A stretch of DNA of 64,000 nt, from positions 1-64,000 of the forward strand of contig MCFE01000337.1 in assembly GCA_002104905.1 (NCBI GenBank), in the 5' to 3' direction. A program made the translations under genes and the position numbers. Below the pieces are notes generated by a model. That model saw nothing but the letters and a program-made list of their open reading frames with translations, was not told the origin of the DNA and made no database searches. Source of the stretch: Basidiobolus meristosporus CBS 931.73. Lineage: Eukaryota; Fungi; Basidiobolomycota. Each line of letters begins with the position of its first letter. The first letter of the stretch is position 1. Of this stretch, positions 8,989 to 63,465 are shown in pieces.

Positions 8989-9337
8989 TGTTGTAAGAGT
9001 CTTGGAGATATTGGAAGTGATTTGGAGAACAAGTAGATTATGTGGTTTTCACTTAATGATTTATTGAATGTAAAATTAGTATTTATACTTTTACCTGGCC
9101 TTGGCATTACAAACACATAGCATAGGTTAAGAAAGGTCCCAGGAACATGTGTGCAAAGTTTGGGGCTGTTTGGACAACTTTGAGAATTTTCATGTTCTGA
9201 GTACCTGGTATTTTGGTGAAAATATTCTAAGTAAATCCCAACAAGGAATTTGGTCAGTATTCTCTAGGATTTGAAGGTGATGATCTAAGTGACTAAGTTA
9301 GGTGAATATTTAGGTGGAATTACAAATTTTTACAACA
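8989..9337 (-). repeat. 3' LTR of copia copy 1 (349 bp)
   Basis: Runs TGTTGTAAGAG...TTTTACAACA and is near-identical to the LTRs at 13,323, 16,611 and 21,276. The polypurine tract TGAGTGGGAG (minus strand) is at 9,338-9,347. Confidence 0.95.
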
Positions 9338-16610: not shown

Positions 16611-19600
16611 TGTTGTAAGAATCTTGGAAATATTGGAAGTGATTGGGAGAACAAGTAGATTATGTGGTTTCCACTTTATGATTTATTGAATGTATAAGTA
16701 GTATTTATACTTTTACATGGTCTTGGCATTACAAGCATGTTGAATAGGTTAAGAAAGGTCCCAGGAACATTTGTGCAAAGTTTGGGGCTGTTTGGACAAC
16801 CTATCCAACTCTCATGTTCTGGGTATGTGGTATTTTGGTGAAAATATTGTGAGTAAATCCCAACAAGGAATTTGGACAATGTTTCTTGGGACTTGAAGGT
16901 AATGATATAAATGACTAAGCTTGGTGGATATTTAGGTGGAATTACAAATTTTCACAACACTCCCACTCAGCTAAATGTTGATACTCACTAGTCCTAATTT
17001 TGACCTAAGTTATTCAAACTTGTCTCTGGCTAATAGCTTGGTAAACATATCTGCAATCATTTCATCTGAAGGACAGTAAACTAAGCTAAAAAAGTTATTC
17101 TCTATAGCTTCATGTATGATATGATGTCTAATATCTATTTGCTTAGTGCTAGCATGAAAGGTTGGATTTTTACCTAATTGTTTACATCTTTGATTATCTT
17201 AAAATAAAGAATAAGCATTTTTTAACCTAGGCCTAAGTCTGTAAAAAGCTTTCTTAGCCACCTTGCTTCTTTTGTAGCTTCACAAGCTGCCATATACTCT
17301 GCCTCTGTGGTGGAATGTGTCACAGTTGGTTGCTTTCTTGAATTTTATGAAATTGCTCCTTTACATTAAAGAAAAGTGTATCCTGCGGTGGATCTTCTGT
17401 CTTGCAAATTTTGTCCCCAATCAGCTTCAGAGTAGCCCATAGGATCCTGTTCTGAATCCTTATAAGTGTATGTTAAGCAGATATCAGCAGGTCCGTTTAG
17501 GTATCTCAATATCAGCTTAACTGCTGCAATATGATCAGATCCATAGCTTTGATTATGCTGGCTGACAACTCTTACTGAATATGAGATATCTGGGCATGTT
17601 CCAAGCATGATATACATCAGACTTTCAACCATAGATTGATAACAAAAGTCAGGGCTTTCACATGGCACTAAGCTCTCTTGATTTGGTTGAGTTTTAACCA
17701 AGTTAAGGCCTGTCTCCATTGGGGTAACTGCTGGTTTACAGTCTTCCATTTGATACTTCTTTAATATATCTTAAATATACTGGGATTGACTTAGGATGAT
17801 AGTCTGGGTACATCTATCTATGGAAAACCTTATCCCTAAGTAATAACTGAGTTCTCCTGAATTGGACATCTTGAACTCTTTACATAAGCTGGATTTAGTC
17901 TCTTCCAATATTGTTAGATTGTTGGTGGCTATAATAAGATCATCCACATATAGAGCTAATAAATTTGGACTTGCTCTGATAGGCTTATAGTATATACTAT
18001 AGCCAGCAATACTCCTTTTGAAACTCAAAGATTCCAAATAAGAATCTATCTTGCAATGCCAGGCTCTTGGTGATTGTTTGAGACCATATAGAGACTTTTA
18101 AACTTGCAGACCAAGTGGGGTTATCTTGATCAACAAGCCCATCAGGCTGGTCCATATACACATCCTCATCACGTTCTTCATTCAAAAATGCAGTTTTTAC
18201 ATCTATTTGATGAATAAAAAAATTATATTTGGCTGTAATAGCCATTATCAATCTGATGAAATTAAACTTGGCTACCAGTGCAAAAGTCTCAGTACAGTCA
18301 AGTCCTTTTGTTTGAGAGTATCCTTTAGCCACAAGTTATGCTTCTAATCTTTCAATTGTACCATCAGCCTTGTATTTTGTCTTGAAGACTCATCCGTATC
18401 CATTTGATTTTTAGTTGATTGGTAACTTGACTAAGTCCCAAGTTTGATCTTCCATTAGAGCCTGATATTCCTCAGTCATTACAGATTTCCAAACTCTGTC
18501 TGAGGGCTATTTAGGGCCTCTTTTACAGTCTGGGGCTCATCAATATGGACTGAATAGGCATAGGCTAAGTTTGTTCCCTTATTGATATAGTAATTTGGGC
18601 TATTTCTTGTCTGGTTGAATCTCCAGGCATTTGATACTGGAATGATCACTTCTACATTATTCCTGGGCACTGATTCAGCCTGAACCACTGTTGTAGAGCC
18701 CTCTGGTGTGAAAAAATTCTCATTTTTTGGCTCTGACTCAATCCTGACTATTGTTGGACTTCAGATCAAATTTTTGTCCTTATCTCATGTCATGTTTTGT
18801 GAAAATTTTGATATTTCATCAAACAACACATCCCTGGACTTACTTAGCTTCTTTGCTTTGGTATTGCAGAGTTTGTATACTCTACTCTATTTGCAGAAGC
18901 CCAAAAAAATGCATTTTACACTTTTTGGCTCAAATTTGGGCTGATTTCCAGCCAGTTTCTTGGTATATGCTGTACACCCAAATATTCTTAGATGCTCTGC
19001 ACTTGGTCTGTATCCATACCATGCTTCAAATGGAGTAGAATCACAAAGTATTTTGTTATAACTCCTATTTTTATGGTATACAGCTGTGGTAACTGATTCC
19101 ACCCAAAAACATAGGATAATTTTTGGTCATGGATCATTGATCTTGCCATATCACTTATTGATCTGTTTGCGCATTTTTCTACTCCATTTGACTGTGGGGA
19201 GTATGGTATAGTAGTCTCTTGCTTTATCCCATGAATTTGCAGAAGTGGATGAAGAGTTATGAGGTATACCCTCCATAATTGTCTCAGCATATTTTTTTGA
19301 TTTTTTCACTGGTTTCTCCTTCCACTATGGCTTTAAACTCCCTGAGCTTAGACAGGGCTTCTTTCTTTCTCTCCATGAAGTAGACCCACATGTATCCTGT
19401 ATAATCATCAATAAAAGTGATTAAATACCTCATCCTGCCTTTGAATAGGTCCACACAGATCTGAGTGAATTAGAACTATTTTTTTTTAGTTTTGATCAAC
19501 CCAGAGCTCTTGAATGTTTTTCTGGCTTGTTTCCCATATATGCAAGCTTCACAGTGCTCCAAATCAGCTGGGGGATCAGCTTTTACTCTGGAGATTAGCT

Positions 19601-21623
19601 GATCTTTATTCATTTTGCACAAATGATCGGAATTGATGTGTCCAAATCTCCTGTGTCAAAGCATTGGTGTTTCTTCATTTAAGTTACCTATAATGGCTTC
19701 CAGATATGATGGAATATAAGTTAACTCATAAAGACTCTGATATCTGAAACTCAGAGCAATATGAGCACCATTTTGATCAGTAATCTTGCATCCAGAATTA
19801 TCAAATCTGAATCTGAGTCCTTCTGCGGTGGCCTTGCTTACAGACAGTGGGTTCTGTTGTAAAAATTTGTAAATCCACCTAAATATTTACCTAACTTGGC
19901 CACTTAGATCATTACCTTTGAATCCTAGAGAATACTGACCAAATTCCTTGTTGGGATTTACTTAAAATATTTTCACCAAAATACCATGTACCCAGTACAT
20001 GAAGATTCTCAAAGTTGTCCCAACAGCCCAAAACTATGCACACATGTTCTTGGGACCTTTCTTAACCTATTCAACATGTAAGTAATGCCAAGACTATGTA
20101 AAAGTATAAATACAACTTTTACATTACATAAATCATTAAGTGAAAACCACATAATCTACTTGTCCTCCCAATCACTTCCAATATCTCCAAGACTCTTACA
20201 AAAGGTTCTTGGCTATTTCTGGTACATCAAGTACCTCTTTAAAGGTCAGTTTATGGCGTCTTTTACTGCTTCTAAGGCTTACTTGGATAGTTCCTTCTCT
20301 TACTGCATCAGGTGTTTTATTGTCACCCATGAAAACCTTCTTAAATTTCTTTGTATGGGGTAAAAAGTTCTTTTTGGTGTGTGAACTGTTGAGATGCTCT
20401 AGAGTCAATGTACCACATCTGAGAATCCTTGTTTGTGGTCATATCCAGTGCAGATATGAATAGTCTATCATCAGTTTTTGCTGCATTTCCATATTCAGGC
20501 TCTTTTGCTGACTATCTCTCTTTCTCAAGCACTGGTCTATTGTGTGTCCTTTCCTTGTGCAGTAGTTACAAAACAGGTTGCTGTTGCCTGTGTAGGGTCT
20601 TGGGTACCTTCTTTGATGGTTATTATTGCTTATTAAAGCATATTTTTTCCTTCTTATAGGTGCTTGATTTTCTTAATTTTTCATCCAGGAGCCTTCCATA
20701 TACATAATTTAAAGTCAAATCTTCAGTTCTGGACTCTAGGGCTGATACAAGGCCCAGAAACATATCTGTCTGGCTATTTAGGATAGTAACTATCAAATCC
20801 TCATCAGTAGTTGGTACACCCACAGATTCCATCTCATCCACCAGCAGGGCAATTCTGTTAATTAGATTTTTCATTTCATCTCCTGGCTGCATCTATGTAG
20901 TACAGAAATTTTGTCTCAGATACATCTTCTTAGCAGCTGAACATGACTGGTAGGTATCTTATAATGCCTTGCAGGCATTCTTTGTTCTTTTTGCTCTTGA
21001 GCATTGAATTAGCAATTTGTCCTTAACATTAAGGCAAATGCAGTTAAAGGCACTTTGTTCTTTCTTCTGGTACTTTAAGGTTTCCTCTCCCACGTTTTTA
21101 GGAGGGTATTCTTCTCCCATGACAATATCCTAAAGGCCTCATTTTTGTAGCTGCATTGCCATCTTTGTCTTCCACACTTGGTAGTTAGATCCATCCAACT
21201 TTTCATTGGCGGAAAAGATTCCAGTAATAGCAGTAATAAACATTGCAGTGAGTGAACAGCTTGGGGCTCATAACCTGTTGTAAGAGTCTTGGAGATATTG
21301 GAAGTGATTGGGAGAACAAGTAGATTACATGGTTTTCACTGGATGATTTACTGATTGTGAAAGTAGTATTCATACTTTTACATAGTCTTGGCACTACAAG
21401 CATGTAGAATAGGCTAAGGAAGGTCCCAAGAACATGTGTACAAAGTTTGGGCTGCTTTGGGCAACTTATCTATTTTCATCTCTGGGTACCTGGTATTTTG
21501 GTGAAAATATTCTAAGTAAATCTCAACAAGGAGTTTGGTTGGTATTCCCTAGGATTTGAAGGTCAATGATCTGAGTGACTAAGCTAGGTGAATGTTTAGG
21601 TGGAATTACAAATTTTTGCAACA
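16611..21623 (-). mobile_element. Ty1/copia copy 2, more decayed, same family as copy 1
   Basis: LTRs at 16,611-16,959 (349 bp) and 21,276-21,623 (348 bp), PBS at 21,264-21,275, PPT at 16,960-16,969. The gag, INT, RT and RH fragments are colinear with copy 1. The flanks GAGGC and AAACA do not match, so there is no TSD. Confidence 0.9.
19855..20203 (+). mobile_element. Solo LTR (349 bp) of the same copia family, antisense inside copy 2
   Basis: Reverse complement of the family LTR, with a perfect GGTTC duplication (19,850-19,854 / 20,204-20,208). The empty site GTAGGTTCTTGGC is at ~12,241-12,253 in copy 1. Confidence 0.93.
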
Positions 21624-22209
21624 AAACAAGGATGCATAGAATTAGGTAGAAATCCAACATTTCATGCTAGAACTTGGCACAAAGATATTGGACACCATTT
21701 CATATGTAAAGCTGTGGAAAATTTGTCAGTTAACCTAGATCACTGTTTTGCATATGAAATGATTTCAGACATACTTACCAAACCATTAGCCAGAGGCAAA
21801 TTAAATTATCTCAGAACACAATTTGGACTGGAGTAATATGGATGTTTAGTTCAGTGGGAGTGTTGTAAGTTTAGTAATAGCAGCCAAAGTCTCCTCCTAG
21901 CTTAGTCACTTAGATCCTAACTATAAATCTTGGAGAATACTGGCCAAACTCCTTGTTGTGGCTTACATTGCAAATATCTTACCAAAAGATCAGGTACTCA
22001 GAATGTGCAATTCCTCAAAGTTGTCCAGACAGCCCTAAACCTTGCACACATGTTCTTGGGACCATCCTGAGCATATTATAAGAGCTTATTTTGCCAAGAC
22101 AATGTAAGAGTATAGATACCACTTTGAAACTCAATATGTCATTAATTGAAAACCACATAATCCACTTGTTCTCACTTTCACTTCCAAATTCTCCAGAGCT
22201 CTTACAACA
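21624..22209 (+). mobile_element. Plus-strand copia relic, right part: RNase H end, PPT and 3' LTR (21,861-22,209)
   Basis: ORF 21600-21836 reads GRNPTFHARTWHKDIGHHFI...DILTKPLARG. AGTGGGAG precedes TGTTGTAAG at 21,861, and the LTR ends CTTACAACA at 22,209 (349 bp). Confidence 0.85.
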
Positions 22210-43490: not shown

Positions 43491-46400
43491 ATGGATTGGG
43501 AATTCGAATTAAAGGAGCTTCTTGACTTCTCCATATTAAAAGTGCTGGCGCGCACTACAGGCTCCACCCTATGCGAGGCACGGGACACCTGCACACAGGA
43601 AGTCAAATGGTTAAAGGCCTTTTCGTCAAGGCGGAATCTTAAAAGAGACCGGTTTTTTTCAGAGTCAATCATAAGGTCAGGTGGCGACAGTTTGGTTCCC
43701 ACCCTACTTGATACCATCCATACTGAAGATGATGGCGATTTCCTCATCCTTGAGCCGGCAGGGATTCCTTTAGACACATACAAACCAACCAGCCTCGAAG
43801 ATTTCCTGTTAATGGCCATACGATGTTGTGACTGCTTGGAGAAGCTCCACTTGTTGGCGATTGTTCACGGAGGCGTGTGTAGGGAGTGCTTCTTGTGGGA
43901 CGAGACAAAGGAGCAGTTGAGGATTTCGGATTTTTGCCACTCACGAACCAATTCCGTACAAAGCCAACTGCACATTACTTCCACCATGATAGACAGAATC
44001 CAAAGTCGCTCCCCGCATAAAGCTCTGGACTTCACCAGTGACATACTAGATTTAGGTAACTATTCTCTAAGAAAGTATTGCTCCACTGCTAGCTTTAGCC
44101 TTTTGACATTGACATAGGCGAGCCATTCTCTTTGCATAGGTTCGGCATTGTTCAAGTTGCTGGTTAATGAACCCCAAGTCGTGGGCATGGATACCTTTGC
44201 CAAAACGGGTATCCGGGCATTCCTCGATCCACAACGATATCCAGTTGCACTGTCCGACTTGTTTGTCAAGTTACTGGTAAGCAGCAAGCAGCTCTCATGT
44301 TTGGCACGGGATATAAACGAGTGATTGAATTTGTAGTCGCCCACGACAACCTACAAAAGCGTGACCGGCCTGAAAGCCGACCTGGATCGGATCCTCTCTG
44401 CCTGCAAGGATCCCAAGAAAACCAACCAAATCCCCCCTGAGCTGGGCAGATACGATTGCCCAGTTTCCTTGCAGCTCCCTAACAAACTGTATGGGCGCGA
44501 GGCGGAGAGGGCGCAGCTGAATACCATACTCGAAAGGATGAGTCATCAAGTGCACGAAGGAAGCCAGTCCTCGGAGCTGGTGATTATCACCGGAGACCCA
44601 GGGATCGGCAAGACAGCCCTTGTCAACTCAGTACTAAACAAAGCGTGGAGGCAGGGTATCTTCGTGTCGTGTAGATGCAGGCGGCATTTCCCACTCGGAG
44701 CAATCACCCAGTGTTTGCGCAGCACCATCAAGAAGATCATCAAATACTCCGACGAGGATCTACAAAGGCTACGGCTCTCGATCTTATCTCAGATCCCTAA
44801 CAACATGAGACTGCTGCTGGATGACATCCCCGAGTTAAAGCTGGTCGTTGGCGTCCACCACCCGCCAGTGGAGCCTCTACCGCCCGCACAGGCCCATATG
44901 CGCTTCTGTATCACTTATCTCAAGCTTGTTCGCGCAATCACCAATCTGGAGATCAATCTGACCTGCTTTCTGGATAGACTGGAATGTGCTAGTCAGGCGA
45001 CGCTGAGTTTGTTCTCGTTCTTGATGAGGAACAGTTGCGGACGCTTGCTGGTGATTGCCGCGAGAAGAGAGTCCGATAGAGAGAACCAATGGATCCGGGA
45101 GCTGCTCGAGTACGACGTCAAAGTCACCGAGATCCCGCTGAGGCCCTTAAGTACCCAGGATGTTCGAGAGTTTGTTGCTGACACGGTTTCGTTAAACACT
45201 AGCGCGGTAGAATCATTAGTCGCTAGCTGCTCTACCGCCGAAGGGAATCCATTTGCGTTGACACAAATCCTGATCGCTTTGTATCGGGAGAAACGAATTC
45301 AGTTCAACCGTGCAAGCAGCCGATGGAGTTGGCAGTTGGATGCCAACAGCAAAATCGTGGATTTCCTGGACGTTGACCTACTCGTACGCTGTTTGCGCAG
45401 CCTCAGCAAAGGCCTACAGACGTTGCTTGCTCATGCTTCTATCATTGGCTACAGCTTTACAGCCAACCTCTTGCACGCCCTGCTCAAGCCGCCGTATCCG
45501 CTGGAGGAAAATCTTCAGATCGCCCTTCGTGAGGGATTCATCAGATACGCCCCAGAAGAGGAGTGCTATTACTTCTTCCACGATATAGTTCAGGAAGCGT
45601 CCCAGAAGCTGTTGGACGAGGATGCCAAGAGCCAGCTTCACCTAAACATCGGTCAATTGCTGTTAAAAGAGACGGGCACGAATGTGTTCCTGATTGCAGA
45701 GCACTTCACCTATGCCGCGGGGATCATCCGTCGTCTAGAGGATCGTGCAGATTACAAGCGATGCTTGGTGGCTGCGGGTGCGAAGGCCAAGTCTTTGGGT
45801 GCTCTGGAGAACTCTCTCATTTACTACCAGAAGGCCATTACACTGGTGGAGCCGCTTCCTCTTCGTGGCCATGCGGAAACCAACTCTTCCTACGAAGAGG
45901 CGTTTTCCTTGATGCTGGAGTGTGCAGAGATGTCCAGCGCATGCCAAGAATTCACAACGGCCTCCGAGATATTGAACCAGCTACTTCTCAAGGCAAGAAG
46001 CCTGACTCACAAATGTCAAGTGTACATACATATCTATCATATTCAAATGGCAACAAATCAATTCGAAGATGGGGTTCAAACAATCCTGAATTGCCTCCGG
46101 GATTTCGGGTTCGATGTCGCACGGGACCCCAAGGATGCCAAGTTGGGCCCCTTACTGGAGGAGCTCCGATACTCGACACTTCTAGCCGACACCAGTGCAT
46201 TGGAGGATCGCCTTAAATGGTGTGACGACCCTCAGATGTCGACGCTAATGGATTTCTTGGCCCCGGCTCTCTACTCCCCTTACATTTCCTGGCTCCGCCA
46301 CATACACATTGCCATCAGCGCCATCATGGTACGCTTGACGCTGAAACATGGGCTTAGCGCACATTCGTGTGAGGCGTTTGTGTACTTCGGTGCTCACTAC

Positions 46401-49400
46401 GCGCATGTGTTTGAGAGCGGAGAGTTTGCGTATGAGTGCGGCAAGTTTGGAGTTCGGGTGGCCAAAAGGTTTGCCGGTCCCAACATCCAGGCCAAAGTGT
46501 ATTTGGTGTTCGCCACGTTTTTGAACCACATGAAGAACGATCCCCACGACGGCCTGACTTTGCTGAAAGAATCCCAGGAGCTCGCCTCGTCGGCCGGTAA
46601 CTTGAAGATCTCTGCCTTGTCGTCGGGTATGGCAGCAACGAAGCAATTCTTCCTGGGCCTTCCGCTTGGCGAGGTGCTCAAAAACGCCAGGGCTAGCAGC
46701 CTGGAGTTGTTGAAGGTACATCCAGACAATAATCTGACGTATGCCATCACCAGCATCTCCAGACTGGTCTTGGCTCTACAGGGGAAGTGTATCCGAGGCT
46801 CAGCAAATCTAATCTTTGACGACGGCCAGTATTCGGAAGAAAACCTCCTTCGTGTCATAACGAGCGAGGCTAGATTTAACCGGTCCATGGTGTGGCACTC
46901 GCGAGTTCGTATCTTCGCATTCTACTTCTTAGGGTATTACCCAGAAGCCCTACAGGAAGCTCAGAGAAGTGAGGAGATCTCGGACAGTAACGAATCCATT
47001 GACAACTTCAAAAAGTGGGCCGTTAGCTTTCACTCGCTGACTCTGGCGGCGCTGATTCGCAAGGGTCAGCTCAATGATAACCAAGCAAAACAAGCTCTGG
47101 AGACCATACGGCAAAACCAGCTGACAACTCAGAAGTGGATCGTCCACCAGGTGTATGGGCCACATACTACGCTCTTCTTGATTGTGGAAGCGGAGCTATA
47201 TGCCTTGAATGGCGAGCCGATGAAAGCTCTGGATCTTTACGAGCAGGCAGCCCAACAGTCACGCCAGTTGAAGCTTGTCCACTACGAAGCATTATCCTAC
47301 GAGCTATATGCCGAATTTCTTTTGCGTCGAGGTTACATCACCACCGGCATGATGATGTTGGAGCAATCCATCAAGACCTATAGTAAATGGGGAGCATACG
47401 AAAAAGCCCAACTGCTTCAGCGTATGCAAGACAATTGGGTCACTAGTCTGCCTGCACTCTCCAAAACCCCCAGCTCCGCCTCAGTGGCGTGCCAAACAGA
47501 CGAGGCGCTAGAGGAGGATGACTCTTCTCGGTTTGCTACAAACGAGATAGTGGCCACTCCTCCATCGCAACAGCCTTCCCCAGGCGGCAGAACGCTGACC
47601 GATTTCATAGAAACTCTGCAGCATCTCTCATCCGAGCTGGAGTATGAGCCGCTGATCCATCAAATCCTTGAACAGACTCCTCGCTTCGTCTCTATACACT
47701 CGGGCAGTCTGATCCTGTTGGACCAGGGAAAGCTAACTGTATCTGCTAGATGGGAACATGACGAGGGTGCGTTTCTGCTGAGCCCGGCCATCCCACACGA
47801 TGACGTGAGTTTCGTATGCAGCGCTTTGGTAGACAAAGCCCTTGCAAGTAAATCGGTGGAGTTTTTTGACTATGACACAACCAACCCTCTGGAAAACGTA
47901 TCCGCTAAGGTCCGCGAACACATAGACAGGAGGTCGGCTGGCAAGAAGTTCACCGCGGCGGTGTTCCCGCTGATTCACAAGAACACCCTGGTCGGCGCCC
48001 TCTACTTCGAAAACACCGCCCTCCCAGAGCCCGATTTGCAAGAGATTGAGCAGCTATGCAAGCACATTGCGCTATGTCTGGTGAACGCGTCCCTCTTAAG
48101 AACCACGCAGCTCAAGTTGCGAGAAACCGAGCAAGCCAAGAACCACTACCTCACCCTTGTGAATGCACTTCCATGTGTTGTGTGGATTGGCAACCGAGAT
48201 GGCTCCAGTTGGTTTGTCAACGAGAAAGTCGAGGAAATCACCGGGGTTACCTCGAATCAGTTTCTGGGGTGGGGGTGGTCACAGTTCATTCACCCAGACG
48301 ATATTGACTCGATGATGAGCAAGTGGCGATCATGCATCGCCAAGCTGCAAGCCTGCGAGTTGGAATTCCGAATGCTCTCGAGAGATGGTACATATAGGTG
48401 GGTGCTAGGTCGCCATGTCTGTGTCCGCGACACGTACGGAAAATACACATGGTACAGCATGTGGATGGATATCGACATCCACAAGCAAGCGTTGTACCAT
48501 GTCGAGGAAGGCAAAAGACGCTACTCGTTGCTTTTGGAATGCATTCCTTGCCAGGTGTTTACTGCTCAGCCAGATGGGATCATTGACTACGTCAACTCAT
48601 CATGGTGCAAGTACACCGGACAGAATATCCAGCAAGCCACCGCGTCAAACTGGACCAGTTGCATCCACCAGGATGATTTGAAGGCCCACCAGGAGCAGTA
48701 TACTCAATGCCTGCAGAATGGACTGACGTTGGAGTGCGAGTGCAGAATTCGTGGGGCCAGTGGAGCCTATCGCTGGTTCATCATCCGCGCCATGCCTTTG
48801 AAGGACTCTTGCGGTACGCTCATCAAATGGTTTGGCATGTGCACGGACATTGACGAACAGAAGCAGCAGCAACGGCTAAAATCCAACTTCTTGGCGAACA
48901 TGTCCCACGAGCTACGCACCCCATTCTCCGGGGTGATTGGGATGCTCTCCTTGCTTCTGGATACGTCTTTGAACAGCGAGCAACTTGAGTACGTGGAGAT
49001 GTGCAAGCAGTCATGCGATGTGCTGATGCAAGTCGTGGACGACCTTCTGAATTTTTCGAAGCTCGAGGCGGGAAAGGTGGTGCTCGAGCAGCTACCGTTT
49101 CACGTAGAAGATCTTCTGGGAGATGTGTGCGAACTGCTGACCACCCTGGTAAGTAAAAAGAACCTTGAAGTTGCGTTCTATGTGGACCCCCGCATCCCGA
49201 GTACCTTAATTGGAGATGGAAATCGCCTGAGGCAAATCCTGCTCAACCTCCTAGGCAACGCAATCAAATTCACCCCCAAGGGGTATATTGTGGTTCGATG
49301 CCACGTCGCTCAAGAGCCATCCCAGGACGGGGAGCTGGTGGTAAAGATCGAGGTGGAGGATACCGGGATTGGTATGACCATTGAGGAACAGGCCTATCTG

Positions 49401-50498
49401 TTTCAACCATTTTCACAGGTCGACGGCAGCACCACACGGCTGTACGGCGGGACCGGACTGGGGCTATCCATCTGCTCGCAACTGGTCAAGCTGATGCATG
49501 GGCGCATTGGGGTGATCAGTCAGAAGGGGAAGGGCTCGAATTTCTGGTTTACAGCCACGCTTAAGCAAGAATCCGACGCTGTGTCCGTCGAGAACGCACC
49601 TGAAATCCTGCAACTCATCAGTCGGATCCACTCGCTCAAGGAGAGTCCCCGCTTTCTTATCAGCCTGCACCAGTCCATTGCCCCGATGATCACGAATTAT
49701 CTCGGCCCGTTTGATTGTGTCACTTGTGAGAACGCACTGGAGATTTCGGAGGGAATCAACGCTGCCAAGGAGGCGAATCAGCCGTTTGACATTGTGATTT
49801 TGGATGCTGCAATGGACCAGGAGCAGTGGGAAATGCTCGTTGAAGCGAGTCTACTAGATGGGGTCAAGACGTTGGTGCTGACCTACCCATCGTCCGTAAA
49901 GATGGATGAAGAGGCCCCTAGCTTTAAGGGGCTGGAAATCCGCCGCATCACCAAGCCAGTGAGGCGATCCAAGTTTCTCAAGTGTGTGGTCGATTTGTTT
50001 GATGGCAATTCGTCCCCCGATGGTGCGCAAACTTTGTCGACCGCCACATCCAGCACCATGCCCGCCGAACCGAATACGGCGAATGAGCCCAATGGTGAAG
50101 GAACGATGCATGTCTTAGTGGCGGAGGACAACTTCATTGCACAACAGCTTATCACTCGAATGTTACAGAGGATGGGACACGACGTCACCGTGACCAACAA
50201 TGGACTTGAGGTGGTAGACGTCTACAAGAGCCAGCCATACCTGTATGCCTGTATATTCATGGACAAAATGATGCCCCTCTGCGACGGATATGAAGCTACT
50301 CGCAGAATCCGCGCTTTCGAGAGCGAAAGCAGCATAACCCGCAGAATACCCATTGTTGCCTTGACTGCGGATGCCCAGTCCAAAACCAAGAAGGAATGTC
50401 TGGGGGTAGGAATGGATATGTGGCTGACCAAACCCTGTGACAAGAAGAACCTCATGAGAGTGCTGGCCGAGGTGGCAGCCCTTCAACCGGAGTTGTAG
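43491..50498 (+). CDS. Hybrid histidine kinase (fungal group X type): degenerate Ser/Thr kinase, AAA ATPase, helical repeats, GAF, 2 PAS, HisKA, HATPase, receiver
   Basis: P-loop GDPGIGKT, H-box [13 protein letters not shown]-box [31 protein letters not shown] and receiver IFMDKMMP...IVALTA...WLTKP. Two 5' introns (~44,056-44,140 and ~44,277-44,336) link the kinase-like exons to the 2,045-codon ORF. Confidence 0.93.
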
Positions 50499-57110: not shown

Positions 57111-57612
57111 GTAAACTTATCCACAATTTTACAAAGATAATAAATGAAATCAAGAAAGGAAGTTCATGTAAAAATGGGGGTTTTCTTTCGTTTGCAGTAA
57201 GCTTAGTTCCAATAACCGTTGGTGAAATTTCTAACAGCTTTTGCTAAACATCAACCACGCGTATAACAGTTGCATAACAACTAATTTGTGATGGATCCGT
57301 TATCCTTCGAAAATCAAATTCTATATTTTGTCCAGCGAAATATTGATCCCGGAAGAGCTTTGGCATTCAATACTATCCAAAATGAGATAAATTGATATCG
57401 CAATATTGGGCAACGGTTGAACTATAAGGAACAGTATATAATAACGCGATGTTTTGCTTAAAACTCGAAAATACAACGGCAAGGATCTTTCACATTAATA
57501 CTGTTAGGTTGCCCAAAGAAACATTCATGATTAATTAAAATGCTATTGCTTTTATTTTACATCCTATTTATACTAATGTTACAATCAGGAAAACACCTTC
57601 TGGCACTTCCTA

Positions 57613-59199
57613 TCAACACTCAATGGCATCAAACTTCCGGAAGATCCAGTAGAAGATGACAGTCATGACTCCCATCAGTCCGGTTTGGATGCCGAACACG
57701 TACACAAAGTTGGGGTCGTTGCTCCACACTGCAAGGATCAGGCCAATCAGACTGCCACCACAGTTGGTGAACAGGAAAAGAGAGGTCACCACCGACTTGA
57801 GCTCGGGGGCGGCTTGTCGGAAGGCGAACTCCAGGCCGGTGACTGAGGCGAAGATCTCGGAGATGGAGATTCCAATGAACGGGATCACTTGCCACCAGAT
57901 GGAGATGTCGTTGACTGGTTGCTCACCCTCGGGCAGGCCACTCAAATCGGTGAAGTTGTAGTAGGGGCCGGTCTTGTAGACCTGTGCTTGGAGAACGGTG
58001 ACATAGACAAAGGCAAGTGTGGCAATTGTGAACCCGATGGTGATGCGTGTGATGGGACCAAGACGGCAGCCCATTCTTCTCAGCAATGGGAAGATGGCCG
58101 TGTCAAAGATAGGGATGGCAACTACCAGGACAAGGCTGTTGACCAGGTTCAGCTGCTCGGGCCCACTGATGAACGATGGTCTTTGCATCGTCAGTCCCAT
58201 GTTGATGAAGTTGTCGGACATGTTGTAGTACAGAGCCCAGTAGAAGGGATAGAACAGGAACACCAAGCAGGCGCGCAGGGTTTTCTTGAGATCCTCGATG
58301 AACTGATCGTCCCACTCAAAGCCATCCACCTTGGCGTAGTCAAGCCAGTGCTCGATGGGCCCATTGGTCTTGGCATTGTCCAACGGGGTCTTGCGATGGG
58401 ACAGAGCATACTTGATGCAGGAGTAGGTCTTCGAGAGGACAGTGCCGGATGGAGGCTTGACATAGTACAGCTTTTTGGCGGACACGAAGATCACGAGGCC
58501 AATCACGAACATGATCGCTGGCAGCGAGTAGGCCAGGGGATAGGATCCGTAGTCGTTGGCAACGATGGGACAGATGAACTGGCCCAACAAGGCGCCACAG
58601 TTGATGGCCCAGTAGAAGAAGCGGAAGATGCGCTCAACGGTGAGCTGTGAGTCGGTGTAGACACCAGGGGTCTTGGTCGGGAAGATTCCTTCCTTGATCT
58701 GCTCAGCGGCAAAGGAGGAAACATTGGACTTGATGCCGCCGGTGCCGAAGGAGATGAAGACATACAGGGCAATCACGAAGCCGATCACACCGAAGCTTCC
58801 ATCCAGAGAGGTTGGGAGGGAGCTGACTGCCAGGAACACCAAGCCCACCATGTAGAAGAGGGAGAATATGACGATGGTCTTGAACTTTCCGATGTAGCGG
58901 TCAGCAACGACGGCACCAAGAATAGTGGTGCAATAGGCCAGAAACTGGAAGCCTCTGTTCACGGCGGTGGCAGTGCTCTTGTTGAAGCCAAGAACCTTGA
59001 GCATGTAGGGTTGGAACAGAAGCGAGGCACCGTAGAAGGCAAAGCGCTCGCACAGCTCGGTGATGATGATGAACCAGGCCGCGAGGGGGACCTTTCCAGC
59101 AACGCGTAGCTTGATGTCATCGGAGTTGGGAGGATCATCTTGTGCAGCATCGATGTGCTCCACTTGGGTAGACTTTTCGAAGGGCTTTTCTTCGCTCAT
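57613..59199 (-). CDS. PTR2: Proton-dependent oligopeptide transporter (POT/PTR family), copy A, intronless
   Basis: ELCERFAFYG (ExxER motif), GAVVADRYIGKF, GTGGIKSNVSSF, FYWAINCGAL, EIFASVTGLEFA and APELKS. The ORF extends to 59,232, but the ATG at 59,199 (MSEEK) is the more likely start. Confidence 0.96.
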   Translation of the reverse strand: MSEEKPFEKSTQVEHIDAAQDDPPNSDDIKLRVAGKVPLAAWFIIITELCERFAFYGASLLFQPYMLKVLGFNKSTATAVNRGFQFLAYCTTILGAVVADRYIGKFKTIVIFSLFYMVGLVFLAVSSLPTSLDGSFGVIGFVIALYVFISFGTGGIKSNVSSFAAEQIKEGIFPTKTPGVYTDSQLTVERIFRFFYWAINCGALLGQFICPIVANDYGSYPLAYSLPAIMFVIGLVIFVSAKKLYYVKPPSGTVLSKTYSCIKYALSHRKTPLDNAKTNGPIEHWLDYAKVDGFEWDDQFIEDLKKTLRACLVFLFYPFYWALYYNMSDNFINMGLTMQRPSFISGPEQLNLVNSLVLVVAIPIFDTAIFPLLRRMGCRLGPITRITIGFTIATLAFVYVTVLQAQVYKTGPYYNFTDLSGLPEGEQPVNDISIWWQVIPFIGISISEIFASVTGLEFAFRQAAPELKSVVTSLFLFTNCGGSLIGLILAVWSNDPNFVYVFGIQTGLMGVMTVIFYWIFRKFDAIEC

Positions 59200-59968
59200 A
59201 GTTGTTGTGGGGAATTTCTGAGGAAACAGCATGGAGGATGAGGCAGCTTTTATTAGTTGTCAGCCAAACTTAATTCAACCAAGTGACAGATTTGGCAAGA
59301 TTGACATATATAAATATAGCCACTTACGGAAAGAAGATTTTTTAGCTGTACGATTGACCATTAAACTTGATTGGGAAGTACATCCAGATATACACCAAAA
59401 TACGTGATTGCGATCAGCTGGTATTGTGGATAACTCTCTGCTATATGGAATGACAACAGGAGTGTTGATAGCCATTACCAAAGACAGACCATTGAAAATA
59501 GCCAGATATGGGTGGCCGTTGTGATAGTCGAATATTCTCCAGAGGCGAGCCTGATGATAGCAGGAAGCAATATTCGTCCTTATATATTCTATTTAGCATA
59601 TAGTATTTACGTGTTAGTGCACCAGAAGGGTTTGCTTTGCTCGTAAAGTTGAGTTTTATTGATTATCAGATGGTTCAATAGTAGAGTGTCAATATGAAGT
59701 TACCAATGTGCAGGAAATGGGAAAGTATGGCTCACTACACGACTGCTAATGCTCCAGAAGTTAAACAAACCATATATTTCAATGCATAATTCAACTCGAA
59801 ATGAAAAGTCACACAGTCAATAGATCGCTTTGCTCAATACCAATATCATTGGACAACTAGAGTTGTTCAACACTGAAATTGCGGAACGGTTTGATATGGT
59901 GATAGGATTAGAAATCTGCAATTAATTCTAATAAATCCGAAACTTTGCTGTTGTCCTTTACTCACAAC

Positions 59969-60433
59969 ATGCTGAGGGTCGAGAGAACAGACAGTAACGG
60001 TAAAGGCTTCAAACAATTGATAGCTGCCTTAGACGAGTATCTAGCCATCGCTGATGGACATTTAAGTGAGGAGGAGCGAAATGCCTATGTGGAGCTAAAT
60101 ACTATCGAATACATAGACACAGTAGTTATGGCATACGATGATGAGGAGCCCGTTGGCTGCGTCTGTTTCCGACCATATGATGCTCAAAAGGCCGAACTAA
60201 AAAGAATGTTTGTCGCCCCTGAAAAGAGGAAGTTGGGCGTTGCTTCGGCCGTAATCGCTGAATCGGAAAACTGGATCAAAGAATTAAACTTCAAGGAGAT
60301 TATACTGGAAACTGGCCAGAACATGCAAGCAGCAATCAACTTTTACACAAAGCAGGGATATGAACCTACTGACAGATATGGGGTATATGTTAATGCTCCG
60401 AACAGTGTTTGTATGAAGAAAGAGATTAAATAA
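59969..60433 (+). CDS. GNAT-family N-acetyltransferase, bacterial-type, intronless (154 aa)
   Basis: PVGCVCFRP, AELKRMFVAPEKRKLGVAS (acetyl-CoA binding motif A), LETG.....AINFY...GY and NSVCMKKEI. Confidence 0.9.
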   Translation: MLRVERTDSNGKGFKQLIAALDEYLAIADGHLSEEERNAYVELNTIEYIDTVVMAYDDEEPVGCVCFRPYDAQKAELKRMFVAPEKRKLGVASAVIAESENWIKELNFKEIILETGQNMQAAINFYTKQGYEPTDRYGVYVNAPNSVCMKKEIK

Positions 60434-61029
60434 AGGTTGTGATATACTGATCTACAAATATAAGCCCTTAAGCCCTGTTATCATGGTAGACGTATTTATT
60501 TCGCGTGTAAAAAACCTTTCGTAAGAAAGGAATCGTTGAATGTTTATGGGAATTAAGCAAGAACGATAGCATCTTTATGGTAAGTAAATAGGCGACCAAT
60601 ATCATGGAAATTATACCGAATTTTCGTGGTTCCTTATTACTGCTTATTTCTCGAGATTGCCATATTAGAGTTGTGGTCCTGGAATCAATTAATTCCTATA
60701 TTTTAGTTTTCTCTCTAGTAGACCAAAACCATCATTGGTTTTACAAAGCTCAGAGAATTTAACAAATAAACCACCCAATCGTGTTGAGCAACGCAGTGGA
60801 AAGTAGCTATTTATTAGAGGTATATGCTGAAATCTAATATACATATTTAATATATTGGCACTCAACTCTGCTACATACCTCTGAAATATTCAAAGCACAT
60901 CCCTGAAATTCTGAATGCCAGCGATATTACCAAGTAAACACTCACGAATAATTGAAACGCTATTGCTTTTATTTTACATCCTATGTATACTAATGTTACA
61001 ATCAGGAAAACACCTTCTGGCACTTCCTA

Positions 61030-62616
61030 TCAACACTCAATGGCATCAAACTTCCGGAAGATCCAGTAGAAGATGACAGTCATGACTCCCATCAGTCCGG
61101 TTTGGATGCCGAACACGTACACAAAGTTGGGGTCGTTGCTCCACACTGCAAGGATCAGGCCAATCAGACTGCCACCACAGTTGGTGAACAGGAAAAGAGA
61201 GGTCACCACCGACTTGAGCTCGGGGGCGGCTTGTCGGAAGGCAAACTCCAGACCGGTGACTGAGGCGAAGATCTCGGAGATGGAGATTCCAATGAACGGG
61301 ATCACTTGCCACCAGATGGAGATGTCGTTGACTGGTTGCTCACCCTCGGGCAGGCCACTCAAATCGGTGAAGTTGTAGTAGGGGCCGGTCTTGTAGACCT
61401 GTGCTTGGAGAACGGTGACATAGACAAAGGCAAGTGTGGCAATTGTGAACCCGATGGTGATGCGTGTGATGGGACCAAGACGGCAGCCCATTCTTCTCAG
61501 CAATGGGAAGATGGCCGTGTCAAAGATAGGGATGGCAACTACCAGGACAAGGCTGTTGACCAGGTTCAGCTGCTCGGGCCCACTGATGAACGATGGTCTT
61601 TGCATTGTCAGTCCCATGTTGATGAAGTTGTCGGACATGTTGTAGTACAGAGCCCAGTAGAAGGGATAGAACAGGAAGACCAAGCAAGCGCGCAGGGTTT
61701 TCTTGAGATCTTCGATGAACTGATCGTCCCACTCAAAGCCATCCACCTTGGCGTAGTCCAGCCAGTGCTCGATGGGCCCATTGGTCTTGGCATTGTCCAA
61801 CGGGGTCTTGCGATGGGACAGAGCATACTTGATGCAGGAGTAGGTCTTCGAGAGGACAGTGCCGGATGGAGGCTTGACATAGTACAGCTTTTTGGCGGAC
61901 ACGAAGATCACGAGGCCAATCACGAACATGATCGCTGGCAGCGAGTAGGCCAGGGGATAGGATCCGTAGTCGTTGGCAACGATGGGACAGATGAACTGGC
62001 CCAATAAGGCGCCACAGTTGATGGCCCAGTAGAAGAAGCGGAAGATGCGCTCAACGGTGAGCTGCGAGTCGGTGTAGACACCAGGGGTCTTGGTCGGGAA
62101 GATTCCTTCCTTGATCTGCTCAGCGGCAAAGGAGGAAACATTGGACTTGATGCCGCCGGTGCCGAAGGAGATGAAGACATACAGGGCAATCACGAAGCCG
62201 ATCACACCGAAGCTTCCATCCAGAGAGGTTGGGAGGGAGCTGACTGCCAGGAACACCAAGCCCACCATGTAGAAGAGGGAGAATATGACGATGGTCTTGA
62301 ACTTTCCGATGTAGCGGTCAGCAACGACGGCACCAAGAATAGTGGTGCAATAGGCCAGAAACTGGAAGCCTCTGTTCACGGCGGTGGCAGTGCTCTTGTT
62401 GAAGCCAAGAACCTTGAGCATGTAGGGTTGGAACAGAAGCGAGGCACCGTAGAAGGCAAAGCGCTCGCACAGCTCGGTGATGATGATGAACCAGGCCGCG
62501 AGGGGGACCTTTCCAGCAACGCGTAGCTTGATGTCATCGGAGTTGGGAGGATCATCTTGTGCAGCATCGATGTGCTCCACTTGGGTAGACTTTTCGAAGG
62601 GCTTTTCTTCGCTCAT
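61030..62616 (-). CDS. PTR2: Proton-dependent oligopeptide transporter (POT/PTR family), copy B, intronless
   Basis: The translated ORF is identical to copy A in the supplied track. Confidence 0.96.
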   Translation of the reverse strand: MSEEKPFEKSTQVEHIDAAQDDPPNSDDIKLRVAGKVPLAAWFIIITELCERFAFYGASLLFQPYMLKVLGFNKSTATAVNRGFQFLAYCTTILGAVVADRYIGKFKTIVIFSLFYMVGLVFLAVSSLPTSLDGSFGVIGFVIALYVFISFGTGGIKSNVSSFAAEQIKEGIFPTKTPGVYTDSQLTVERIFRFFYWAINCGALLGQFICPIVANDYGSYPLAYSLPAIMFVIGLVIFVSAKKLYYVKPPSGTVLSKTYSCIKYALSHRKTPLDNAKTNGPIEHWLDYAKVDGFEWDDQFIEDLKKTLRACLVFLFYPFYWALYYNMSDNFINMGLTMQRPSFISGPEQLNLVNSLVLVVAIPIFDTAIFPLLRRMGCRLGPITRITIGFTIATLAFVYVTVLQAQVYKTGPYYNFTDLSGLPEGEQPVNDISIWWQVIPFIGISISEIFASVTGLEFAFRQAAPELKSVVTSLFLFTNCGGSLIGLILAVWSNDPNFVYVFGIQTGLMGVMTVIFYWIFRKFDAIEC

Positions 62617-63465
62617 AGTTGTTGTGGGGAATTTCTGAGGAAACAGCATGGAGGATGAGGCAGCTTTTATTAGTTGTCAGCCAAGCTTAATTCAACCAAG
62701 TGACAGATTTGAGAATATTGACAGATAGGGATATAGCCAATTTAGGTAGTTGACCCACTGATTTATTTCAAGCAAAATCCAATCAATTATACTTAAATAG
62801 GTAGCTCTTTCAGAAGATAGTTAACCTGAATCAATTTTTAGTCATCTGTTTACTTATCAAGATTTGCCAATCATTTAACCTTTTATGTACTGAGCATTTG
62901 CCTAGAGTAATTATCGGTTTGAGATCTTGGCCATATTCCAATCCTGACCCCTAACCCCATCCAAATACAGATAACAACCAATCATGCCCTCTAGGCAACG
63001 ACATCGGAAAGCTTTGATAGTTGTTTTGTAAGCACACGGGGCAAGGCCAAATTAGCAGCAATATTACCCAGCAGCTTGGCCATGGAGCTTATTGTAAGTA
63101 ATTGGTGGTACTTCAAATCCAGTGATTTCTATTCTAATTTTATAACTAAAGGCTAATTGACTGCTACTCTAAAGATATAAAAGTCACTCTCTCACTACAT
63201 ATGTAGCTTAACCATATTGTACATCTCTCCAAGCTTGGTCGGAAGGATAAGTGCATTATCAATTAATCAGTGAATGTAACATCCACTCCCATATGCTCGG
63301 AATTAATTGCTTATTATGTGGAGGGAAATTCTCTTCTGGAATAGCACGCGGCATTATTACTTTGTTGGGCTGGCTGCTTCCCCTGCATTTTCGTATCACT
63401 CCGAGCCCTTTATATTTGGCGGCCTTCGTTCTTCAGGCGGTAAGTACGGCACTATTGGAGCAACT

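Follow-up and report, generated by a model that had tools for sequence, protein, structure and literature searches.

A Bacteroidota-type GNAT acetyltransferase gene, probably acquired by horizontal transfer, between peptide transporter genes of the fungus Basidiobolus meristosporus

The stretch of DNA analysed here (the window, 64 kb in length) is 100% identical to contig MCFE01000337.1 from the genome assembly of Basidiobolus meristosporus CBS 931.73 (GCA_002104905.1). Within it, an intronless gene for a GNAT N-acetyltransferase lies in an AT-rich spacer between two genes for peptide transporters of the PTR2/POT family. The features of this locus are as follows.

57613..59232, minus strand: PTR2/POT peptide transporter gene, upstream copy, 539-aa ORF (Pfam PF00854, E 9.8e-78)
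59323..60931, no strand: unique AT-rich 1.6-kb spacer between the PTR2 repeat units, which holds the GNAT gene (self-blastn)
59920..60454, plus strand: sole stretch that can be aligned to the Basidiobolus ranarum locus, with 87% DNA identity (blastn and pairwise alignment)
59969..60433, plus strand: intronless GNAT N-acetyltransferase gene, an uninterrupted ORF from ATG to stop (154 aa plus stop)
61030..62649, minus strand: PTR2/POT peptide transporter gene, downstream copy, 539-aa ORF (Pfam PF00854, E 9.8e-78)

Our profile search assigned the 154-aa product to Pfam PF00583 (Acetyltransf_1; E 2.4e-17, 63.7 bits against a cut-off of 20.7) and also to PF13508 (Acetyltransf_7; E 1.5e-14, 54.5 bits against a cut-off of 27). 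The two flanking transporters are of the eukaryotic type, as they score 316 bits with TIGR00926 versus 86 bits with the model of the bacterial subfamily, a typing that is a relative comparison in that 316 bits is below the TIGR00926 cut-off of 821.6 bits. Both belong to a tandem duplication (57516-59322 and 60932-62739) having 98.7% DNA identity over 1808 bases by self-blastn, which found no second GNAT copy within the 64-kb window.

Elsewhere in the assembly, the picture is one of repetition. The GNAT gene is found on three contigs of GCA_002104905.1, MCFE01000285 and MCFE01001194.1 being the other two, and its protein sequence, which is letter for letter that of P0168, is identical on two of them. 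In all three copies, the gene order PTR2-GNAT-PTR2-aspartic protease recurs, and the segment common to them is about 99% identical over 4.7-4.9 kb. Because of this near identity, we take the three copies as recent duplicates and count them as one observation rather than three. The third copy, on the 13.8-kb contig MCFE01001194.1 (L002:681-1249), bears the gene model ORX64581.1 ('N-acetyltransferase GCN5', 149 aa), whose 92% identity would at first suggest a divergent copy. This was ruled out, as only two single-base homopolymer indels separate the underlying sequence from the coding sequence in the window, and the gene model spans them with a false intron. The indels are either an assembly or polishing error or the mark of a very recent pseudogene. 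As a separate observation, tandem arrays of PTR2 and aspartic-protease genes, with units that are 97-99% identical, occur on at least three assembly contigs (the window at 57516-59322 and 60932-62739, and L056 and L057), and these look like the expansion of a nutrient-uptake gene family.

Upstream of the GNAT gene on MCFE01000337.1, genes for a hybrid histidine kinase, KRR1, and Sec1 are located within 15 kb. The sensor kinase is encoded by an uninterrupted ORF of 2045 aa at 44361-50498 on the plus strand and is annotated as a protein of 2083 aa with NACHT, PAS, HisKA, HATPase_c, and response-regulator domains. In the main text of the published survey of this strain, phosphorelay sensor kinases also rank as a top category of transfer candidates (Tabima et al., 2020; PMC7466969). 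Further out, the first part of the window (1-23000) is AT-rich, with a GC content of 0.35-0.41 versus about 0.50 further on. Copies of a repeat are scattered over these 23 kb (e.g., 9011-9187, 16633-16789, 20003-20218, and 22015-22156), and the same repeat recurs in B. ranarum, where it lies just 3' of the GNAT gene with about 70-72% identity (L001:11504-11722). This repeat is probably a transposable element.

At the level of the protein, the acetyl-CoA motif A, (R/Q)-x-x-G-x-(G/A) after strand 4, is present as R87-K-L-G90-V-A92, where R87 and G90 each reach 90% conservation or more in a 50-sequence alignment. Moreover, 46 bacterial homologs define 36 columns with a conservation of at least 90%, and the Basidiobolus GNAT retains 33 of these, including, besides R87 and G90, the invariant residues E76, K78, R79, E114, and Y126. 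The three conserved positions that have changed are G65V, L99S, and A103I. An AlphaFold2 model built with the 50-sequence alignment (pLDDT 93.2, pTM 0.87) predicts a mixed α/β fold of standard GNAT topology, and the top PDB matches listed by Foldseek for this model are all GNAT-type acetyltransferases, with a probability of 1.00. Foremost among solved structures is a putative acyl-CoA N-acyltransferase from Klebsiella pneumoniae (PDB ID: 3LOD; Foldseek E 4.8e-11, TM 0.81-0.86; sequence E 5.7e-08), and by sequence Bacillus subtilis YsnE (PDB ID: 1YX0) is also one of the best matches. However, the identity is only 24%, and both are structural-genomics entries without an established substrate, and thus give no functional assignment. 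We therefore rejected solved structures as a guide to function, the best matches being uncharacterised. The eukaryotic N-terminal acetyltransferases Naa50/NatE and Ard1 share the GNAT fold (Foldseek TM about 0.6) but give no significant match at the sequence level, whereas the Basidiobolus protein aligns end-to-end with stand-alone bacterial GNATs.

We also compared the protein with the NCBIfam models, none of which reached its own cut-off. The ribosomal-protein S18 acetyltransferase RimI (TIGR01575) fell short with 40.6 bits against an equivalog cut-off of 86.4, as did the streptothricin acetyltransferases Sat2 and Sat4, the best of which (Sat4) scored 37.6 bits against a cut-off of 380. The aminoglycoside acetyltransferases AAC(6') and AAC(3) likewise fell below their cut-offs (27.2 bits against 140 for AAC(6') group E). 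By sequence, then, these models place the GNAT in none of the known detoxifying families.

A second species carries the same gene. In B. ranarum, the 154-aa protein KAK9766065.1 (P0001) is an ortholog with 90% protein identity, and its gene is on a contig that also bears septin, CRAL-TRIO, and Aha1 genes. The stretch that can be aligned between the two loci extends beyond the ORF by about 50 bases upstream and about 20 bases downstream, and no PTR2 gene is found beside the B. ranarum GNAT in the 12.4 kb examined. Given this 90%-identical ortholog, the gene is older than the split between B. meristosporus and B. ranarum. Comparison of the two genes gave a dN/dS of 0.10-0.15 by three methods, and of the 53 nucleotides that differ between them, 38 occupy third codon positions; the low ratio and the excess at third positions point to purifying selection. 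From the letters of the DNA, the original prediction had described an intronless 154-aa GNAT between two fungal PTR2 genes, embedded in a fungal gene block and intact enough to be under selection. The ORF, the Pfam assignments, and the TIGR00926 comparison agree with the first of these points, and the linkage to fungal genes holds for KRR1, Sec1, and PTR2 on the same contig, on three contigs in all, and in a second species. Selection is borne out by the dN/dS, and the family motifs that had been named match the consensus of the 50 aligned homologs.

In base composition, the GNAT gene stands apart from the flanking PTR2 genes, with a GC of 0.43 and a GC3 of 0.46 versus 0.54 and 0.74. The spacer on its two sides is lower still in GC (0.38 and 0.35), and among the remaining long ORFs of the window's gene-rich region, GC3 ranges from roughly 0.36 to 0.74. 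The B. ranarum copy (GC 0.42, GC3 0.41) and several Bacteroidota homologs are similar in this respect. According to the main text of the published survey, the transfer candidates of this strain show no GC difference as a class (Tabima et al., 2020; PMC7466969), unlike the GNAT in the window, whose GC3 is clearly below that of the neighbouring genes. Such a composition fits a foreign origin or low expression and proves neither.

To identify relatives of the GNAT, we performed an exhaustive HMMER search of 1.84 billion representative proteins, which returned 4147 matches at E 1e-3 and 773 at 1e-10, though only 4 at 1e-30; outside Basidiobolus, none exceeded 50% identity. A word-index search gave a similar result, as only two Basidiobolus proteins were above 50%. 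Among the matches listed, all of the named ones outside Basidiobolus are bacterial (Dyadobacter, Pedobacter, Flavobacterium, Pontibacter, Ulvibacter, and a Pyrinomonadaceae genome), and the best named relatives are from Bacteroidota, with 39-50% identity. Most matches are unnamed metagenome proteins, and in three large searches no named fungal protein besides those of Basidiobolus was among the matches listed. Moreover, a scan of one genome per species for 185,579 bacterial and archaeal species yielded 51 loci, of which the full-length matches were from Bacteroidota at 39-44% identity (Bacteroidales, Flavobacterium, Saprospiraceae, Dyadobacter, and Mucilaginibacter) and from Paenibacillus at 31-34%. 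The nearest clusters in the ESM Atlas are 91-100% Bacteria and are most often assigned to Bacteroidota. Closest in kind are the compact Bacteroidota GNATs (annotated as 'GNAT family N-acetyltransferase' or 'putative N-acetyltransferase YsnE'), which are about 150 aa long and can be aligned end-to-end at 39-50% identity. Unlike these, however, the Basidiobolus copy is in a fungal chromosome, has a long branch, and is altered at three conserved positions.

The closest metagenomic relatives (P0021, P0175, P0176, and P0287) are encoded on bacterial contigs. The gene for P0021 (50% identity) is preceded by an ORF whose translation reads as a putative LytTR-type response regulator, those for P0175 and P0176 each have a MarR gene downstream, and P0176 is surrounded by genes with T9SS Por_Secre_tail and CHU_C domains, which are markers of Bacteroidota. 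P0035 and P0287 represent a tandem-GNAT fusion adjoining a GH115 gene. Many of the bacterial relatives are in fact about 300 aa long (P0024, P0031, P0035, P0036, P0044, and others), and some match the query twice in a GNAT-GNAT arrangement. Other bacterial homologs are fused to GyrI-like effector-binding, YjbR, DUF3291, or nitrate-reductase-associated domains. We found no conserved bacterial gene neighbourhood, the neighbours being different in all seven Bacteroidota genomes (carbohydrate-binding modules, TruA, DUF202, PMT_2, GMC oxidoreductase, Mur ligase/RadC, TetR, ALO, AI-2E, and DUF1287). With no shared neighbours, and with MarR downstream in only two metagenomic contigs, we rejected the neighbourhood as a source for a functional assignment.

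The highest-scoring protein outside Basidiobolus is P0020 (49% identity), which has a relative, P0174 (46%); the two are 73% identical to each other. Their genes come from a second eukaryote, and are located on Logan contigs from SRR25833176 and SRR25833172 as follows.

L054:5026-5490: intronless GNAT gene
L058:3727-4191: intronless GNAT gene

An intron-bearing IucA_IucC/FhuF (siderophore synthetase-like) gene lies about 1.5 kb away from one of these genes, and an M28 peptidase gene that was called in collinear pieces lies about 600 bases from the other. The introns in the IucA_IucC/FhuF gene are about 60-90 nt long, with GT..AG ends and GTAGG or GTAAG donor sites, and the intergenic DNA of the two contigs is about 30% GC. 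Since the neighbouring genes bear GT..AG introns, we regard both contigs as eukaryotic. Neither L054 nor L058 has a PTR2 gene. All four eukaryotic copies of the GNAT (the two from Basidiobolus, P0020, and P0174) are intronless, though the genes next to them have introns.

For the phylogeny, we began from a FastTree overview of 272 domain-trimmed rows, in which Basidiobolus and the second eukaryote are joined (support 78) within metagenomic bacterial rows. In a quick tree of 87 rows, the four eukaryotic rows are not joined, and four long bacterial rows attracted Basidiobolus; P0160, P0103, P0063, and P0153 were dropped, together with redundant near-identical rows. The final IQ-TREE analysis covered 61 rows and 150 columns under LG+C20+F+G4, with bootstrap values that are rough, as they had not fully settled. 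Here, Basidiobolus, the second eukaryote, and all Bacteroidota rows form a 58-row clade (support 100/99), outside of which are the three outgroup rows from other phyla, and the named members of this Bacteroidota-type clade are Bacteroidota plus one Acidobacteriota genome. Within it, the bacterial fusion protein P0035 groups with Basidiobolus and the second eukaryote (81/83), and in the best tree the four eukaryotic rows make up one clade, weakly (76/48). A broader quick tree, for which rows from Paenibacillus, Actinomycetota, Acidobacteriota, Chloroflexota, Verrucomicrobiota, and Proteobacteria were added and ten redundant Bacteroidota-type rows removed, again recovered the Bacteroidota-type clade (SH-aLRT 99), with the Paenibacillus, Actinomycetota, Chloroflexota, and Proteobacteria rows outside. 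In this tree, the eukaryotic group joins that of the T9SS-context contig (SH-aLRT 93). The branch leading to Basidiobolus is 1.1-1.25 in length in the tree of 150 columns. As the backbone of the Bacteroidota-type clade lacks resolution, the trees name no donor below the rank of phylum.

Taken together, we consider it probable (roughly 0.8) that the GNAT gene came into the Basidiobolus lineage through horizontal transfer, with a Bacteroidota-related bacterium as the donor. As to direction and age, we infer that the gene would have passed from such a bacterium into the fungus before B. meristosporus and B. ranarum separated, and that it would since have been retained intact as a working single-exon gene, which in B. 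meristosporus would now be part of a multi-copy array of peptide-transporter and aspartic-protease genes. An acquisition from bacteria is what the original prediction had proposed, naming a compact GNAT type of Bacteroidetes and Firmicutes and calling for a maximum-likelihood tree. The relatives, the trees, and the linkage to fungal genes in two species favour it; the relatives are mostly from Bacteroidota, with Paenibacillus (Firmicutes) more distant, and the trees nest Basidiobolus in the Bacteroidota-type clade with a support of 99-100 and leave other bacterial versions outside.

The second eukaryote groups only weakly with Basidiobolus, which bears on the age and number of transfers. As a variant of the main explanation, it is possible, if tentative, that the two eukaryotes made separate acquisitions from related bacterial donors. 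In keeping with this, the clade that unites their four rows has the low values of 76/48 and is missing from the 87-row quick tree, the two groups (46-49% identical) are no closer to one another than to the best bacterial matches (up to 50%), and the bacterial P0035 belongs to the same clade (81/83). On the other hand, both the best maximum-likelihood tree and the FastTree overview (support 78) join the groups. Seemingly unlikely, by our estimate, is one ancient acquisition by a common ancestor of Basidiobolus and the second eukaryote, after which the intronless gene would have been kept in working order. We give less credence still to vertical descent, that is, an old eukaryotic or fungal gene lost in most lineages, whose bacterial look would come from the sparse sampling of eukaryotes. 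It would explain the homolog in the second eukaryote, on contigs with spliceosomal introns in the neighbouring genes (L054 and L058), and the weakly supported clade (76/48) that this forms with Basidiobolus. However, no named fungal protein besides those of Basidiobolus was among the matches listed in the three large searches, bacterial rows enclose the eukaryotic ones at two successive levels (SH-aLRT 93 and 99) with other phyla outside, and the four eukaryotic copies are intronless next to intron-bearing genes. Least credible is bacterial contamination or an assembly chimera. The small size of the gene, its lack of introns, and a GC below that of the genes around it would suit this reading, but the gene lies well inside a 92-kb contig, with PTR2 genes of the eukaryotic type on either side and KRR1 and Sec1 nearby, has the same arrangement on two further contigs, appears beside septin, CRAL-TRIO, and Aha1 genes in the independent B. 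ranarum assembly, and, with no bacterial match above 50% identity, has no plausible contaminant source.

With regard to the biochemical role, we infer by analogy that the enzyme most likely N-acetylates a small molecule with acetyl-CoA, as is presumed for its bacterial relatives, and this target could possibly be a xenobiotic. A bolder alternative is that the GNAT shields the fungus from toxic peptide antimetabolites imported by the flanking PTR2 transporters. More generally, the enzyme might cooperate with these importers and the secreted aspartic protease, for example by acetylating toxic amino-acid analogues from imported peptides, which we think improbable. The order PTR2-GNAT-PTR2-aspartic protease on three B. 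meristosporus contigs would suit such cooperation, and some bacterial homologs adjoin MarR or TetR genes or carry ligand-binding fusions, which fits the handling of small molecules. Yet the three copies, as recent duplicates of about 99% identity, count once, PTR2 is absent from the 12.4 kb in B. ranarum as well as from L054 and L058, and by sequence the protein is a member of no known detoxifying GNAT family.

Basidiobolus is a rare case of a fungus with a large load of bacterial genes, which is thought to be due to its life in the gut of amphibians and reptiles. For the same strain, CBS 931.73, the main text of Tabima et al. reports 806 candidate transferred genes, or 5% of its genes, chosen as having no fungal BLASTP hit, a normal coverage, and fungal genes on the same scaffold (Tabima et al., 2020; PMC7466969). 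Introns are absent from 61% of these candidates, the sources named there include CFB/Bacteroidetes, and one of the top ten GO terms is N-acetyltransferase activity, with 28 models across the candidate lists. That main text is without a gene-level analysis of the GNAT in the window, and the main text of a further paper treats acetyltransferases only in general terms (PMC11291939). Most likely, the GNAT is one more case of bacterial gene transfer into CBS 931.73, a process already published in bulk for this strain, N-acetyltransferases included. It is nonetheless a clean single-gene case of a Bacteroidota-type family, intact, under purifying selection, present in two species, and multiplied in an array, which adds detail to the picture of transfer in Basidiobolus and no new principle. 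One lead beyond the published picture is new, namely the related GNAT in a second eukaryote, which could date the transfer or reveal the repeated uptake of the same bacterial family. Were a single ancient acquisition to prove true, the GNAT would be a bacterial gene that became fixed long ago in a fungal lineage of early divergence, and not one picked up recently in the gut.
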